A DNA stretch of 64,000 nucleotides from Oopsacas minuta (taxonomy: Eukaryota; Animalia; Porifera), in NCBI GenBank assembly GCA_024704765.1, contig JAKMXF010000033.1:310001-374000 (forward strand), given 5' to 3'. Below are positions 10,781-18,302 of this stretch, in pieces. Position numbers and translations under genes: made by a program. The notes beneath the pieces are model-generated. The model was not told where the DNA came from. It did not search any database and saw only the letters and a program-made list of their open reading frames with translations. Numbering within the stretch: the stretch's first letter is position 1; every line of letters starts with the position of its first letter.

Positions 10781-11920
10781 GCAAGGTGTTTGGGGTTAGA
10801 TACAAAGGTAGACATTCTGTTATCAAGTCTAGCCCCTGAATGCGTAAAGGAGAAGTGTCTATCACCTTATTTTATATATTACAGTTAGTAGTCATTTCAA
10901 ATTAGATCTGTCTACATCAGCATTTTTCAAGTTTGATGTGCTTGCATTCTGATTAGAAAGTTGATGAGTAAACTTGTCCCAGACTAATTAGCAAAAATAA
11001 AATCTGCTGTGGCTGTTTTACTATGCTTAATTACTCGTATGATTAGCCTACTGATAAAATATACAGTTGGTGTTTTGATGAATTTTAGAATGAGGAATTA
11101 TAATGTCGACGGCTATGTATAACAGAATATCTTAAAGAGATTAGTGATAATTATTACAAGTTGGGAAACAGTTAGAAACTGGTTTAAATGTATTATTCGT
11201 ACTAATACTCGTTAACTGAAATACACTGCAACCTCTATAAGTGGGGTCTCAATAATGGGGAATCACCTTAAGCGCTTTATATTCGTTCATTTCCACACAA
11301 ATGGATTACCCCATAAAGAAGGCCTTCGCTCGGGTTCTTGCCACGAAACAAAATTTTTTTGAAAATCCGAGGAAGATGAAAATTACTATTTTGTGATTTT
11401 CACAATTGTATGTCTCATTGTGTCTGTTTACAATATTGAACCATTAAACTGGCTATTTCATCATTCACATGATAAACTGACAAAAGTATGTTCCTGAATT
11501 TCCCGTCCACTGAGAGTAGTGTATTAACCTGTGTAAACTAGTAGAATTCTACAAGCTTGTGTAATAGCTGTGCTACTAACTAGTACAGCATGAAAGTTCA
11601 TCTGTATATATAAATAGATGGGAGCCAAACTACAAACTAAGCTTTCAATATAACCACTTGTTTCAAGTAAGTACCCAACAATTGTTTGATATTTTGTGTA
11701 CAGTCGGTATCAAATTTTGATTTGTCCCGCGAGGTGAGTATACAATTAATCCTTCTAAATCGGATAGGAAATGAGATACAATTAATTAAATACCAAATTA
11801 CACAAAAGTAGCATTTGAAATTTGATTACATTTTAGACAAAGCAATAAATAGCATACCTTATATATTAATAGAATGTATTTTTGTATATGAAGGCTTGTG
11901 TAATTCTGTACTTGTGTAGA

Positions 11921-13983
11921 ATGGCGACCAAAAAAATAAAACAGGCATTTCACAGAACATCGACACCAAAAGAAAAAGGTGGTCAACCCCTAAAAGTGGT
12001 GATTGTTGGAGCTGGTTTAGCAGGAATGTGTGCAGCTCATTTGCTTACACAAAGCGGAGTCAATGTAGAAGTGTTTGAAGCGTTGGATAGAGTTGGTGGT
12101 CGGACATATGCAATTGATGGTGTAGATCAAGGAGGAACTTTTCTTGGGCCTCAGAAAAAGCGAACCATATATTTGGCAGAGAAGCTAGGTGTCAAACAAA
12201 TAAATTTGAATAAAGATGGTTTGTACACGTTTTTTCTAGATGGGAAAGTGTATCGAACTAAGATTGCGCTCCCTTTTGGTGCACTTGCCGTTGATGATCT
12301 TCTGGCGCTACTCTGGGCATTGGGAAATATAATGGTGAAAACTAGCGAAATAAATTTAGATGAACCTTGGAAATCGGACAATGCATTGGAATGGGATAAA
12401 AAGACTGTACAAGATTATTTTAATGATTTGATATTCACTGAAGTTTCAAGAGAACTGTTTCAGATAGTTGTTGAAGTACTCGTGGGTGTAGAACCTTGGG
12501 AAATGTCCATGCTGTATTTTCTTTGGTACATTAAATCGGGTCATGGTATTATTGATATTTTGACGGATGCACAGGATTCAATTCTTGAAGGAGGTGCTCA
12601 GCAATTAAGCCAAAAACTTGCTGTACTAGTCCAAAGTGCCAGCCCAAGAAACAAAGTAATAACCAACGATCCAACATTGTCCATTCACAAAGATAACGAC
12701 AAAGTTTTTCTAAGACAACAATCAGGACTTACTTCGCAAGGAAATTACGTAATTGTTGCAACAACGCCCAGCGTACGAAACCAGATCGAGTTCAAAAACG
12801 TGGGATACAATGGTTTGTATATGCAATACGCACAACGTATGCCGATGGGTTCAATATTGAAAACTTTCATGTATTACAAAACTAGGTGGTGGCATGATAA
12901 TGGATTTAATGGGATAGCTACAATGAGTGGGGCTGCGAATTTCGTTGGTCAGGTTTTTGATATTTCCCAACAAACTCCCATTCCTTGCCTAATGGGATTC
13001 GTACTTGGTGATAAAGCGAGAGAATGGCAAACTCTAAGCAAAGATGCAAAAACAAACATCCTAAAGCGAGAATATGAAATTTTTGAGGGTGATGGACCTG
13101 CGAATTTAGACTTTGTGGAATACAAAGAATACGACTGGTTGGATGTGTCGTATATCGGGGGCACCGGAGGTGTAGCAGGTCCTGGCACCACTACAACATT
13201 CCATCAAGCCATATGTACACCAATTGATGATGCAAGAATCTATTTCGCTGGTACTGAGACTGCTACGGATTGGACAGGGTACATGGATGGAGCTATCCAA
13301 TCTGGATGGAATGCCGCCAAAGAGATTTTGAAAAAGGAAAACATTCCTTATGATGACCCTGAAAAGCACATTAAACAAAGCACAACATTCTTTGACGAAC
13401 TACAAGCATTGATTGTTTATATTATCAAAGAGATACTCAAAATTTTCGGCAGGTAATGATTTGTTGTGTGCACTTCAGGGTAGAGAATCGTAATGTGTAT
13501 AAATATTATCAGAGTTTTATCGTAAATTTGTATTTAGTAAAGGCAAGAAAGACCTGAAGTCACTCTCAGGATCAGAATCAGTGGAAGAGGTAATATTTAT
13601 TCGTATTTACCATTATGAACTAACTAATACACTTAGTATATAAATATACAAGCTCGATTATCCGAACTCGTTGGCACTGGTCAAAACGTTCATATATAAT
13701 GAAGAATTCGGATAATCAAGGTTGCACTGATCCATCATATTTATTAAATTTTAATTTTTAGATATTTCAAAGTATGTTGCATGCACTGGGTTTGAATGTT
13801 GATAGTGAGCTACAAAATTTACTGAATGAAGATCCGACTGGGGTGCATCATTTGCTGCTAGCATTTGAAGAAAGAACAAGTAAAATTGAAACCCCAACGA
13901 GTATCCAAAGTGTGAAGGTACTTGAGACTAGTGAAAACCGCCTAATAGCAAATCGTATTTGTAAGAACTTTCCTTGCCATTAA
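11921..13983 (+). CDS. Flavin-containing amine oxidase (MAO family) with a spliced C-terminal extension; possibly fused to the downstream FAD oxidase
   Basis: GAGLAG Rossmann motif, EALDRVGGRT, GSILK lysine and YFAGTETATDWTGYMDGA. Exon 1 is 11921-13452 (AG|GTAATG), exon 2 is 13538-13589 (TTTAG|T ... GAG|GTAATA), and exon 3 starts at 13762 (TTTTTAG|ATA) in frame with ORF 13774-13983. Exon 3 either ends at TAA 13983 or splices at 13917. Confidence 0.88.
13649..13729. mobile_element. Small Tigger-like MITE in amine oxidase intron 2
   Basis: Inverted CTCGATTATCCGAA ... TTCGGATAATCAAG (13/14), ending CACTG. Confidence 0.6.
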
Positions 13984-14216
13984 TACGCAACTATTTACCA
14001 TACAAAACTGCAATGTAATGTCATGAGATTAGTTGCTATAAGCGGTTTCCACTGTGCATGCATTTTGTTCTTATCCTGAAATGTATATTAGTTAGTATAC
14101 AGTGTAGAGAGAATCTATACTATCAAAATAGTAGTAAAATACTCTTTACGACAGTACTAACGGAATTCCATCGAATACAAAATCCTATTTTATAAATATA
14201 ATTCTTCTAGCATTTA

Positions 14217-15791
14217 ATGACAACGAAATTCAAGAATTTAGAAGGTATGGCTACTCATGAGATAGCAGATGCAGTACATTACATTGGATCACATTTGAAG
14301 TTTGAGGATATTATCCCACGAAAAGTTCCACAGATTAAAGAAATAACAATTGAAGACGAACTCAAGCATATCCGTTTTCAAAATGGGATATATTATCCTG
14401 ACTACATAGATCAAGTTGTCGATCTGGTTATGTACAGTCGTAAATATAAAAAAATTGCGCGATGCAGGGGTTCTGGGCATTCGCCTCCAGAATCTATTTT
14501 CGCGCCAAATGGAATCGACATGGTTTTGTCTGGAGATTTAAGAACTGTATCGTTAGTTGAAGAATTACCACTTAATCGAGCCGTGTTCAAGGTGGGTGGA
14601 GGATGCTACATTGGAGTAAATCGCTTAGATCCTACTTCAACAAGAGAGAACTCGTTAAGTTATCAAATTTCGCAACTTGGATATGCCATATCAATTACCG
14701 GTGGCATCAGTGAGCAATCTATTGCAGGTTTTATGCTAACAGGATCTTCAGGAGGTAGCGTTAAATTTGGCTTTCCAGAATCTATCCGCGAAATTCAGTT
14801 TGTTAATGGGAAAGGTGAAATAAAAACTGTCTCACCAACTGTAGAGAAAGACCTCTTCTATGCAGTTGGCGTTTCAATGGGTTTATTCGGTATTGTAATA
14901 TCTGTGACTATTGAGGTTGTTCCATATTTCAATGTTGTCGGAGAGGAAACCAATGTAATGTACGCGAATTCATCTTTACAGCCTCACAAATTCATACATT
15001 ATCTTAAAGACCAAGAGTACTATCATTCACAATGGTTGCCACAAAAAGGTGTCAATCGTGTAGATGAATTCTTCGGCAAGAAAACACAGAGTACCAAAAT
15101 TAAAAAGTATCACCATGAAGTTGGAAGTCTTAAAGTTGGTATAGAGGCAGCAATTGCTCTGAAGATTACCAATGAAATACTGACAAGAAGTGACCCAGTT
15201 AAGCCGTGGGAGGAAACTGTGATTGCATTTCTTCTAAAACAGTTCCTACCTATTCCGTATAAGGAAACTTTCCTAGATTACTGGTACATCGCATTGCCCA
15301 ATGATGATTTAGCACCAATTGATACTCTACTGAAAGTAGATTTCTTGGAAATGTGGTTTCCAATTGATTTTGCTGATGAACTAATTGCAACTCTACAACA
15401 AAAGGTGTTTCCATATCCCAAGAAAGCTGGTAACATTACGACTGAGTTTTATGCATCAAAAGAATCTCCGTTTTGGTTGAGCATGTCCTATGGTAGGAAT
15501 TGTGTACGTCTAGACAAGTTGCGATGGGCATACGATATCGGCCCTCCAAGGGATTTCTACAAATACTATTGGGATGTATTAATGGCCAAACCAGGAGCGA
15601 GGTTTCATTGGGGGAAATGGATGCCTCAAAACGGAGATGTTTGCGATGGCTTGGTTTTCAATCTTGACTTCTTGAAAAAAGCCTACCCCAAAATGGAAGA
15701 ATGGTTGATTTTTCGTGAACTGATGGATCCTGATCAAGTATTCGTTTCAGATTATTGGAGATCAATCTTGGAAATCCCAAGATTAAAATGA
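14217..15791 (+). CDS. FAD-linked oxidase, VAO/PCMH family (L-gulonolactone / D-arabinono-1,4-lactone oxidase-like)
   Basis: Intronless 524-aa ORF with RGSGHS (histidyl-FAD attachment motif), GGISEQSIAG, DLFYAVGVSMGLFGIVISVT and C-terminal RFHWGK. Confidence 0.9.
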   Translation: MTTKFKNLEGMATHEIADAVHYIGSHLKFEDIIPRKVPQIKEITIEDELKHIRFQNGIYYPDYIDQVVDLVMYSRKYKKIARCRGSGHSPPESIFAPNGIDMVLSGDLRTVSLVEELPLNRAVFKVGGGCYIGVNRLDPTSTRENSLSYQISQLGYAISITGGISEQSIAGFMLTGSSGGSVKFGFPESIREIQFVNGKGEIKTVSPTVEKDLFYAVGVSMGLFGIVISVTIEVVPYFNVVGEETNVMYANSSLQPHKFIHYLKDQEYYHSQWLPQKGVNRVDEFFGKKTQSTKIKKYHHEVGSLKVGIEAAIALKITNEILTRSDPVKPWEETVIAFLLKQFLPIPYKETFLDYWYIALPNDDLAPIDTLLKVDFLEMWFPIDFADELIATLQQKVFPYPKKAGNITTEFYASKESPFWLSMSYGRNCVRLDKLRWAYDIGPPRDFYKYYWDVLMAKPGARFHWGKWMPQNGDVCDGLVFNLDFLKKAYPKMEEWLIFRELMDPDQVFVSDYWRSILEIPRLK

Positions 15792-16101
15792 TAACTCAAT
15801 TATAGTGTGTATGTGTGTGTGTGTAGGCCTCGCAATTAGGATATTATTAGATCAGGACTACTGACTGTAGTAATGTATGTACACGTTTAGTTAGGAGTTA
15901 TGCGCGTATATATTTCGTATTGAACTTCGTATCTATTCATAGTGTGTTAGATTAATAGGATATCATTTGAGTCAATTGTGCTAATGGTTTATGAACTACT
16001 ATTCATGCGAGACACCGGTTGAAGTATGAAAGCTCTAGTAATGGATCAGCCAGTACAACTGGAGTATAGTTCTCACATGGCAGCATAGCTATAATACGAT
16101 A

Positions 16102-16252
16102 CAGTCAACTCTCGTTATATCGAAGCTTAAGGGACCACGATAAGTACTTATATAACCAATAAAGTATATGCTACTTTGAAGGTTTGGGACCATATTTGTA
16201 CAATTTCAGACTTCGATATAAGCGGGTGTTTCGATATAATAGGAGTTAACAA
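16102..16252. mobile_element. MITE family A
   Basis: TA|CAGTCAACTCTCGTTATATCGAAG ... TTCGATATAATAGGAGTTAAC, with the shared core GGTTTGGGACCATATTTGTACAATTTCAGAC. Confidence 0.85.
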
Positions 16253-16429: not shown

Positions 16430-18302
16430 TCAAAAATATTTCTTCTGTCTATTCTCTTTCATCTTAAGACAAGCCATGAAACAGCTAAACACTAACAAGT
16501 GAAAACACAAAAGTAAGAACACTGTCCAGAATCCGATACACCCTGTACATTGTACAGAGGCCGCATGCTCACTAGAAACAGGTTTTTGTTTTAGCTCACC
16601 AAACGCTACTACTAATTGAGTTAACGTTCTATCCATATTACTTCTCAGTTCATTTACAGAGTCTTGTAATGACTTAACTTGTCTATTAACTTCATGAAAA
16701 GAGCCTTGTGATTCAGAGCTAATACCATCTTGTTTGGCATCATTAATTCTATGTTCTAGATTCTTAATATCTCTGCTAATAGAGCTGAGTATGTTTGTAT
16801 CAGTACTGCTTATTGCTGCTTTAGTTGATAATAATTCCCTGATAATTCCCTCCTGTCTTTCCAGGAGTAACTTGAGTTTACTCTCTACATTAATCTCAAA
16901 ATCTTCTAGTAAATACTCATTCCTGGTGTCTGGGTGTTCTTCTTGGTACCTGGTCCTCCTCTCTGAGAATTCACGATCAAATTCCTCATACAGTTTACTC
17001 ACTCTTTCTCTAACAGAATCTTCTTCAGAGCTAGCATCTGAGAATACATTATAATATGTTACGAATAATTTGGTAATTTAACCTACTTTGATTTATTTCT
17101 GAATTTGGACCCGACTCCAACTGTTTGAGGGAGTGTAGTGTGAAGCACATGACGTCATGATCATCAGAGAGACCTCCTGTAGCAGCAGTCACACCTAGAT
17201 ACCCTTCAGTAAAGGTGAAAACAGGAAGGATAGACTGAAGACACAAATCATAGTCCTCGTAGCCCGGGTTTAAATTGTATCCAGAATGTACCCAAATCTA
17301 ACAATATACTGTTAATATTCCAAAATTCCTGAAAACATACAGTCATCTCCCGTTATACCGAACCTCGAAGGATCGTGATAATTACTTAAGCGATGAATAT
17401 ATGTACAATTTCATACTTCGATATATCCGTGTTTGATACAACGAAAGTTGACAGTATGATATTTACAATTCTATACTTGAATATTAGAGCTATTCTACCT
17501 GTAATACATCATCTGCTTTAATTATCTTAATACGAACAGCATAAGGCTGATTTCTATAATCCTTCATGCATGAAGACAACTCGTCAGATTTACCATCTAG
17601 CTGGTGGTCATATCGATGTGTACCATCATTAATAACTAATTGTATCTTAGGATTGTCTTTTAGGGCATCGTTATCAAATGAGTCTAACATTATACCAATC
17701 CCATTCCATACGTCACTGCTACCAAACACGGGACCTCTTCCCATTTGCTGTTCTGTCAGCCAAATAGCCATCCCATCTGCACCCTGTCGTAGCCTGCCTG
17801 ACACCCGGAGTGCCATATCGATCTTAATAATAAAGCAAATAAATAATCCAAGCCTTAAAATCTGATAGGCAAATATTACCCTAATTGAATAACCCTGAAA
17901 AATCCCAATTTTGTAGCTCTTATCAGTTTCTCAATCAATTTACATACAGAAAAACCATCGAATAGTAATATATAAGATATTTTGTCAATTAACTACCTCC
18001 CAATCCTTAATAGTTAGCTTCTGCTCATTCCATACAAATCCTTGTCTACTTCTAATGCTAGGTACAATCCTAAGTGAGTCTTGTGTTGCTATGGCATCTC
18101 CTCCATACCTCCAGAATGCTATCCTACTGTCTCTGCCTAGCGTAAGCTTAGGAGCACAGAAACTGTGTTTATACTCGTGTCTGTGAATAATATCAGAACG
18201 CTGATACCATTGTGTTAGAGAGATAGGCAGCAGATCAGCTGAGCAAGTAGAGAAGAATAGCAACAAATAGGAAGTGAGGGAGATGTATAGGATTATATTC
18301 AT
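16430..18302 (-). CDS. LMAN1: ERGIC-53 L-type lectin cargo receptor (4 exons, about 482 aa)
   Basis: Exons 18302-17997, 17822-17499, 17297-17087 and 17037-16430 join in frame through GT-AG introns. The protein has a signal peptide, HEYKHSF, GADGMAIW, DSFDND, GVTAATGGLSDDHDV, a coiled-coil stalk, a TM helix and C-terminal KKYF (compare KKFF). Confidence 0.93.
17340..17454. mobile_element. MITE family A in LMAN1 intron 2
   Basis: TA|CAGTCATCTCCCGTTATACCGAAC ... AAAGTTGACAG|TA. Confidence 0.75.

Follow-up and report, generated by a model that had tools for sequence, protein, structure and literature searches.

A four-exon gene that very likely fuses an amine oxidase to a lactone-oxidase-like flavoenzyme in the sponge Oopsacas minuta

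We analyzed a 64,000-nucleotide stretch of the genome of the sponge Oopsacas minuta (GenBank assembly GCA_024704765.1, contig JAKMXF010000033.1, positions 310,001 to 374,000 of the forward strand), here called the window and numbered from its first letter. It contains two intron-free open reading frames (ORFs) on the same strand with about 760 nt between them. The first encodes an amine oxidase of the MAO type, and the second (14217-15791) encodes a VAO-type oxidase resembling the lactone oxidases of the ALO family. Positions 11921-15791 very likely constitute one four-exon gene, which would be translated into one polypeptide of 1106 amino acids (aa) with two FAD sites.

The MAO ORF starts at ATG 11921, and its stop codon at 13454-13456 overlaps a splice donor, AG/GTAATG (the slash marks the cut), so that exon 1 ends at 13452. 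Intron 3 has a donor AAG/GTACTT after 13917, an acceptor TTCTTCTAG/CATTTAATG at 14211, and a TACTAAC sequence at 14155-14161; ATG 14217 is located 6 nt past this acceptor. The four exons sum up to 1532 + 52 + 156 + 1581 = 3321 nt, giving 1106 aa. This structure had been proposed in an earlier reading of the window made from its letters alone (the sequence-only reading). The stop inside the donor at 13452, the phase-0 donor and acceptor of intron 3 and the TACTAAC sequence are all present where that reading placed them, the total length was recomputed and agrees, and exons 13538-13589 and 13762-13917 are in frame both by the joints in sequencing run X4, described below, and in five other genomes. 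The parts of the gene are as follows.

11921..13452, plus strand: exon 1, MAO-like domain and an amphipathic tail of about 40 aa; 510 full codons plus 2 nt of a split one.
13453..13537, plus strand: intron 1, 85 nt, GT..AG, phase 2; skipped in X4 contig record 18 (joint 13450>13536, cut +2).
13538..13589, plus strand: exon 2, S-KGKKDLKSLSGSESVEE, 52 nt; inside X4 record 18; 52 nt in 6/6 genomes, with the peptide conserved.
13590..13761, plus strand: intron 2, 172 nt, GT..AG, phase 0; X4 joint 13587>13760 (cut +2).
13762..13917, plus strand: exon 3, a helical linker module of 156 nt and 52 aa; in X4 record 18; conserved in 6 genomes.
13918..14210, plus strand: intron 3, 293 nt, GT..AG, phase 0; X4 joint 13915>14209 (cut +2).
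14211..15791, plus strand: exon 4, a flexible linker of about 50 residues, then an ALO-like oxidase of the VAO/PCMH fold; stop at 15789-15791.

All three introns lie within the linker, each catalytic domain being one long intron-free exon. Exon 2 contributes 17 aa and exon 4 contributes 526 residues. When intron 3 is retained, the frame in the window gains 21 extra codons and stops at 13981-13983. Retention leaves a MAO-only frame in every species compared.

Splicing was examined using four runs of one sample (X1 to X4) that cover the locus, taken as Logan contigs with run types unrecorded. X1, X2 and X3 are DNA-like and colinear over the whole locus, with Nextera-type adaptor ends in X2 and X3. 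X4 has TruSeq-type adaptor ends and zero depth in intron 2 (bin 13603-13733), and it contains three exact GT..AG joints, 13452/13538, 13589/13762 and 13917/14211. No joined form was found in the DNA runs X1-X3 from the same sample. X4 contigs thus behave as RNA. Record 18 of X4 is composed of 12597-13450, 13536-13587 and 13760-13917, joining the MAO body to both linker exons, and record 20 begins at position 14209. Depth is 395 at the exon 3-exon 4 joint versus 39.5 in record 19 (13888-14238), the contig retaining intron 3. As a rough guide, contig depths are about 457 in exon 1, 395 at the exon 3-exon 4 joint, and 506 in exon 4. The fusion transcript is taken as real because the joints match to the base the sites predicted independently from the five other genomes.

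It is extremely unlikely that these joints are not splicing at all, with X4 being a DNA run that carries a processed intron-less retrocopy, or with the joints being assembly artefacts. The unrecorded run type and the contig-level nature of all the evidence leave room for this. On the other hand, three DNA runs cover the locus end to end with no joined form, X4 depth falls to zero in intron 2 and to one tenth in intron 3, all three joints are exact GT..AG joints at the independently predicted sites, and the contigs end precisely at exon boundaries, which a mix of spliced and unspliced molecules would produce.

Conservation of the layout was examined in close relatives (68-84% identity), all of which are unannotated contigs from ENA or Logan assemblies. 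In every one of them, namely loci L001, L002, L003, L004, L007-L012 and L016, a MAO ORF stands directly upstream of an ALO ORF on the same strand. In the alignment of the intergenic DNA, both small exons are conserved; similarity breaks off precisely at the GT that follows exon 3 and resumes at the acceptor 6 nt before ATG 14217. Splice phases were checked exon by exon in six genomes, the window and five others. The four-exon model is in frame in 6/6, with 1095-1111 aa in the five that have an uninterrupted MAO exon; the sixth, L004, has an in-frame stop in exon 1, though its layout is in frame. Exon 2 is always 52 nt, exon 3 is 156 or 159 nt, and all splice sites are GT..AG, while intron 3 varies in length (293, 65, 2221, 73, 797 and 67 nt).

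Where the second ORF has its start codon, ATG 14217, both L002 and L004 read ATT. From the acceptor on, the peptide (H/Q/D)(L/I)(M/I)xxK(F/L)xNL is nevertheless conserved, with changes mostly at third positions. Across the two linker exons plus the ten opening codons of exon 4, the ratio of nonsynonymous to synonymous change per site (pN/pS) is 0.22-0.39 among the four closer species. Judged from these comparisons, the linker exons are under purifying selection. The low pN/pS and the conserved peptide past the acceptor together argue that the linker is translated.

The sequence-only reading had raised an alternative, in which the locus is a dicistronic unit: MAO ends at 13983, the 14211 acceptor receives a trans-spliced leader, and each ORF yields an enzyme of its own. 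Some sponges are reported to use spliced-leader trans-splicing, ATG 14217 comes just 6 nt after the acceptor, and the intron-retaining form, at depth 39.5, ends the MAO frame at 13981-13983, all of which would suit this arrangement. However, no loose (leader) ends at 14209-14211 were reported in the X4 contigs, and the cis joint is present at about ten times the unspliced depth. The intron-retaining contig, record 19, continues into exon 4 with no end before it. No AATAAA exists in 13457-14216, between the two ORFs, just as the sequence-only reading had stated. Additionally, two relatives have ATT for the ATG from which a separate ALO protein would start, and six genomes keep the frame across the joint. 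The dicistronic arrangement is therefore very unlikely. The comparison that the sequence-only reading called for, between 13917-14211 junctions and leader-joined ends, thus yields at the contig level a junction that is present and leader ends that are not reported. Its fusion reading is borne out by the depth of the 13917/14211 joint relative to the retained intron, by the frame kept in six genomes, and by purifying selection on the linker.

The linker itself was modeled exon by exon. Between the two folded domains there are about 160 aa, as the MAO fold extends to about residue 470 and the VAO fold begins about 50 residues into exon 4. The sequence-only reading had put the linker at about 70 aa, which holds for what the two linker exons encode, not for the interdomain stretch. 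The AlphaFold model of exon 3 has three helices with a predicted local distance difference test score (pLDDT) of 67, and Foldseek found no match for its fold in the PDB. A UBA-like domain was considered for exon 3 from an LGF...LLxAF pattern seen by eye, and was rejected: Pfam, searched at E-values up to 10, gave noise and no UBA hit, and the model has no PDB match. Residues 1-45 of exon 4 have a pLDDT of 40-70.

Another rival accepts the fused mRNA but keeps the enzymes separate, either by cutting the linker after translation or by making the fused mRNA a read-through (‘conjoined’) form beside independent transcripts. A long linker that is partly disordered by the above scores, a MAO-only frame upon intron-3 retention in every species, and stand-alone homologues lacking the partner elsewhere (L005 and L006, described below) would agree with it. 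Yet contig depths are similar in exon 1, at the joint and in exon 4, and none of the X4 contigs seen begins within intron 3. The first ATG of the ALO half is missing in two species, the linker is conserved in length and frame under purifying selection, and no cleavage motif was identified. Separate enzymes from a fused mRNA are on this balance unlikely, if less so than the dicistronic unit.

The family identities given in the sequence-only reading were confirmed for both halves; for the second, one of its two Pfam domains is slightly below cut-off. Database searches and fold predictions were run exon by exon. In the MAO half, PF01593 (Amino_oxidase) matches residues 33-470 over the full profile (1-443 of 443) at 2.4e-53 and 182.5 bits, and the closest solved relatives are rat and human MAO-A/B (2e-69 to 1e-65). 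In the VAO half, PF04030 (ALO) scores 35.1 bits against a cut-off of 23.1, and PF01565 (FAD_binding_4) scores 24.6 bits, slightly below its cut-off of 26.4. The following sites bear on cofactor binding and catalysis.

12008..12025, plus strand: GxGxxG dinucleotide-binding motif G30-G35 of the MAO half (alignment A1; NAD_binding_8 5.6e-11).
13163..13165, plus strand: Thr415 (ACC) at the covalent-FAD Cys position (HMMER alignment to PDB MAO-A chains).
14478..14480, plus strand: His88 (CAT) of GSGHS, the predicted 8-alpha-histidyl FAD site (23-sequence alignment A4).
15606..15617, plus strand: HWGK motif H464-K467 in the ALO C-terminal domain (alignment A4; aligns with 8ot8).

In alignment A1, G30, G32 and G35 are invariant columns. 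HMMER alignments to 1O5W and 2BXR show that the active-site Lys is kept, GSILKTFMYY pairing with GAVIKCM(V/M)YY, and so is the cage Tyr, WTGYMDGA pairing with WSGYMEGA. On the other hand, IGGTG aligns with SGGCY, so that Thr415 and Gly416 replace the covalent-FAD Cys and the cage Tyr there, and GGTGG is common to all members of the fused clade. Because Thr stands where MAO has Cys, we infer that the MAO half binds FAD non-covalently. The C-terminal transmembrane anchor is absent, and a tail with charged residues, ...LIVYIIKEILKIFG, is instead spliced on to exons 2-4, so the MAO half would no longer be membrane-anchored.

The second half matches TIGR01678 (sugar-1,4-lactone oxidase) at 1e-32 with 113.7 bits, far below the cut-off of 396.8, which argues that it is not a bona fide sugar-1,4-lactone oxidase; by its sequence it is placed in a divergent paralogous subfamily. 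The predicted exon 4 model has a pLDDT of 88.7 and the VAO/PCMH fold. Foldseek pairs it with L-galactono-1,4-lactone dehydrogenase, alditol oxidase, DprE1 and cholesterol oxidase at 1e-23 to 1e-18, and all four of these enzymes oxidize a CH-OH group. Among the 23 sequences of alignment A4, R82, G85, S89, H464 and K467 are invariant, while H88, W465 and G466 are nearly so. HWGK aligns with the HWGK of alditol oxidase 8ot8. By motif, H88 is likened to the His of GxGHS, the covalent histidyl-FAD site in GULO, ALO and AldO. By this analogy, the VAO half would bind FAD covalently through His88, and by analogy with its structural neighbors it would oxidize a CH-OH group. As for targeting, inspection shows that the C-termini (...EIPRLK, ...EIPKK) are not SKL-type and that no clear type 2 peroxisomal targeting signal (PTS2) lies near the N-terminus.

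The origin and spread of the fusion were examined with quick trees and distant loci. Among named sequences, the closest to the MAO half is a gene model of Ephydatia muelleri, with 46% identity. In the MAO tree, the fused clade sits on a long stem within a 14-sequence clade that includes Ephydatia, and this clade is separate from the other animal MAOs and from metagenomic, presumably bacterial, ones. At the distant MAO locus L005 there is no ALO gene within 10 kb downstream, and at the distant ALO-like locus L006 there is no MAO within 10 kb upstream. These stand-alone homologues indicate that the fusion is derived and limited to one clade. Both of them (L005:10001-11581 and L006:10001-11632) are single uninterrupted ORFs, like the fused domains. 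Intron-free domains are consistent with an origin by retroposition or transfer, between which and other origins the quick trees do not decide. Horizontal transfer was considered as the origin and set aside, as the MAO half lies in a sponge-type clade and the ALO half in a polytomy, with no donor nameable.

We propose that the fusion arose within a single sponge clade, out of two neighboring genes that had no introns: the MAO stop would have come to fall inside a donor site, and intergenic sequence would have been recruited as linker exons. Retention of intron 3, at about one tenth of the depth, would give a MAO-only protein in addition.

Both halves keep their catalytic hallmarks at the sequence level. 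In the mechanism that we favor, if at less than even odds, they would act in turn on one substrate that has an amine and a hydroxyl. Oxidation of the amine would give an aldehyde or imine, that of the hydroxyl or lactol would give a carbonyl or lactone, and each step would release H2O2. Sequential amine-to-lactone chemistry is plausible because the VAO half folds like alcohol, polyol and lactone oxidases. Consecutive oxidation of the two groups in the same molecule is nonetheless offered tentatively; parallel action on related substrates and simple H2O2 co-production are possible alternatives.

A hint about the substrate comes from other fusions of the same oxidase subfamily. Four long single-ORF proteins (P0245, P0281, P0321 and P0330), which came up in an exhaustive search with the ALO half, combine the neutral/alkaline ceramidase domain Ceramidase_alk (PF04734) with FAD_binding_4 and ALO. 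The ceramidase-fused oxidases share 33-39% identity with the sponge VAO half and fall in two distant places of the ALO tree; the P0245 and P0330 loci, the two inspected, have bacterial gene contexts. Loci of the ceramidase fusions are located at the following positions.

L013:8001-11837, L014:2616-6890 and L015:1258-5532: ceramidase-fusion loci, with proteins of 1278-1424 aa.

P0321 additionally carries a SnoaL_2 domain, and a Penicil_amidase fragment adjoins P0330. Another protein, P0306, has acetoacetate-decarboxylase-like and polyketide-cyclase domains with the same oxidase subfamily. The ceramidase-fusion proteins and P0306 all appear uncharacterized. A ceramidase releases a long-chain amino alcohol and an amine oxidase acts on amines, so the two kinds of partner would point to a substrate with nitrogen and hydroxyl groups. 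The sponge protein could thus be a dedicated two-step oxidase for amino-alcohol lipids, namely sphingoid-type long-chain bases or similar sponge metabolites, which we consider a rather improbable specific case of consecutive oxidation. Here the MAO half would act on the amine and the ALO-like half on the neighboring hydroxyl or lactol, with the intermediate passed along the tethered domains. If true, it would represent a previously unknown route for breaking down sphingoids or amino alcohols, or for tailoring natural products, one that the recurrent ceramidase fusions of bacteria foreshadow. SphC of P. aeruginosa, a predicted FMN-linked oxidoreductase (PMC11893366), was considered as a sphingosine-oxidase precedent; membership of the same family is not shown, and SphC is not used as support.

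Several observations weigh against a single, functional two-step enzyme. The exon 3-exon 4 joint is carried by a single short contig whose shorter side has 28 letters, below the 31-letter bridging rule of our contig comparison; in our reading, that length is the one to expect of a k=31 bubble contig. The RNA-like evidence comes from one run of one sample with its type unrecorded, in contigs rather than raw reads, and a search for runs with RNA from other species returned this sample alone. Among the contigs no single molecule spans all four exons. Post-translational cleavage of the long flexible linker is possible, and the sequential-oxidation mechanism is conjectural. In the quick ALO tree, a long stem carries the fused clade, which joins coral, echinoderm and bacterial groups in a polytomy that does not resolve the nearest relatives of the ALO-like half. 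Finally, sample ERZ25072740 has two copies of the fused locus with 87-91% DNA identity, both damaged: L004 (4712-6205) is interrupted by an in-frame TAG near MAO codon 98, and L016 (5677-10613) has lost 5 nt within the ...IYFAGTETA FAD motif and is frameshifted again near ALO residue 311. These copies are probably pseudogenes or decaying paralogues. Since both are broken, the gene would be dispensable in at least one lineage.

Some further features lie in and around the gene. Relatives all start with MA(T/S/A) at the ATG equivalent to 11921. An in-frame upstream ATG at 11888 (11888-11920) would add 11 residues (MYMKACVILYLCR...), and is not conserved in relatives. A possible acceptor, tgtag/A, is immediately upstream of ATG 11921, and at the 5′ end a contig start at 11936 is among the X4 contigs listed. 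Position 13502 in intron 1 is A>G in X2 and X3 contigs, not in X1, probably an allelic variant of the same individual. A 32-nt short dispersed repeat in intron 3 (13930-13961) recurs with 1 mismatch and unrelated flanks in other X1-X3 contigs. Downstream of the gene, AATAAA occurs at 16158 and 16305, and the flanking features are these.

15792..16163, plus strand: 3′ untranslated region and first AATAAA (16158-16163); X4 record 22 reaches 329 nt past 15800.
16430..17002, minus strand: a convergent ORF of 190 aa, tail-anchored in appearance, with a body resembling a coiled coil and a hydrophobic segment at the C-terminus; about 270 nt beyond the first polyadenylation signal of the fused gene.

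The MAO family and the VAO-type family are both well-studied H2O2-producing flavoenzymes of unrelated folds. We found no description of a natural fusion of the two in literature or database searches, and the statement in the sequence-only reading that no characterized fusion is known stands after the same searches. Among the best 150 matches of the exhaustive representative search with the ALO half, none was an Amino_oxidase fusion, which is weak evidence of absence because the fused clade's own cluster is likewise unlisted there. The ESM Atlas gave plain FAD_binding_4 + ALO clusters only. The word search covers proteins up to 1.75 times the query length, so it is blind to annotated fused proteins.

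A conserved, expressed fusion would imply that both activities belong to one pathway, and so offers a route to the substrate of an otherwise uncharacterized ALO-like subfamily that also occurs in corals, echinoderms, fungi and bacteria. It would also be a case of gene birth by exonization, in which two adjacent intronless genes were joined via three new introns and linker exons, with stand-alone relatives, intact fused forms and decaying forms all there for comparison. A natural two-FAD system with one predicted covalent and one predicted non-covalent cofactor could in addition serve as a model for the channeling of intermediates.

The predicted protein can be compared with known systems half by half and as a whole. 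MAO-A and MAO-B (1O5W, 2BXR, 1GOS) share the same Amino_oxidase fold over the full length with about 35% identity, as well as GxGxxG, the Lys and the Tyr of WSGYMEGA. However, they have the Cys-Tyr of SGGCY where the sponge fusion has Thr415-Gly416, and a C-terminal outer-membrane anchor where the fusion has a linker into the second enzyme. GULO/ALO, GalDH (8QMY), AldO (2VFR, 8OT8) and DprE1 share with the other half the VAO/PCMH fold, the ALO C-terminal domain, the GxGHS His and HWGK, whereas identity to solved structures is 15-19% and the sponge half has about 50 extra N-terminal residues and the MAO fusion. The bacterial ceramidase fusions contain the same ALO-like subfamily, with the oxidase likewise C-terminal to an enzyme handling a nitrogen-bearing lipid, but their N-terminal partner is an amide hydrolase rather than an amine oxidase, and each is one uninterrupted ORF. 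A pairing of the two folds in one pathway is known from Arthrobacter, where 6-hydroxy-L-nicotine oxidase (6HLNO) has the MAO fold and 6-hydroxy-D-nicotine oxidase has the VAO fold. 6HLNO is among the PDB matches of the MAO half. The Arthrobacter nicotine oxidases provide a precedent for a MAO-fold and a VAO-fold flavoenzyme in one pathway, but as separate proteins acting on opposite enantiomers.

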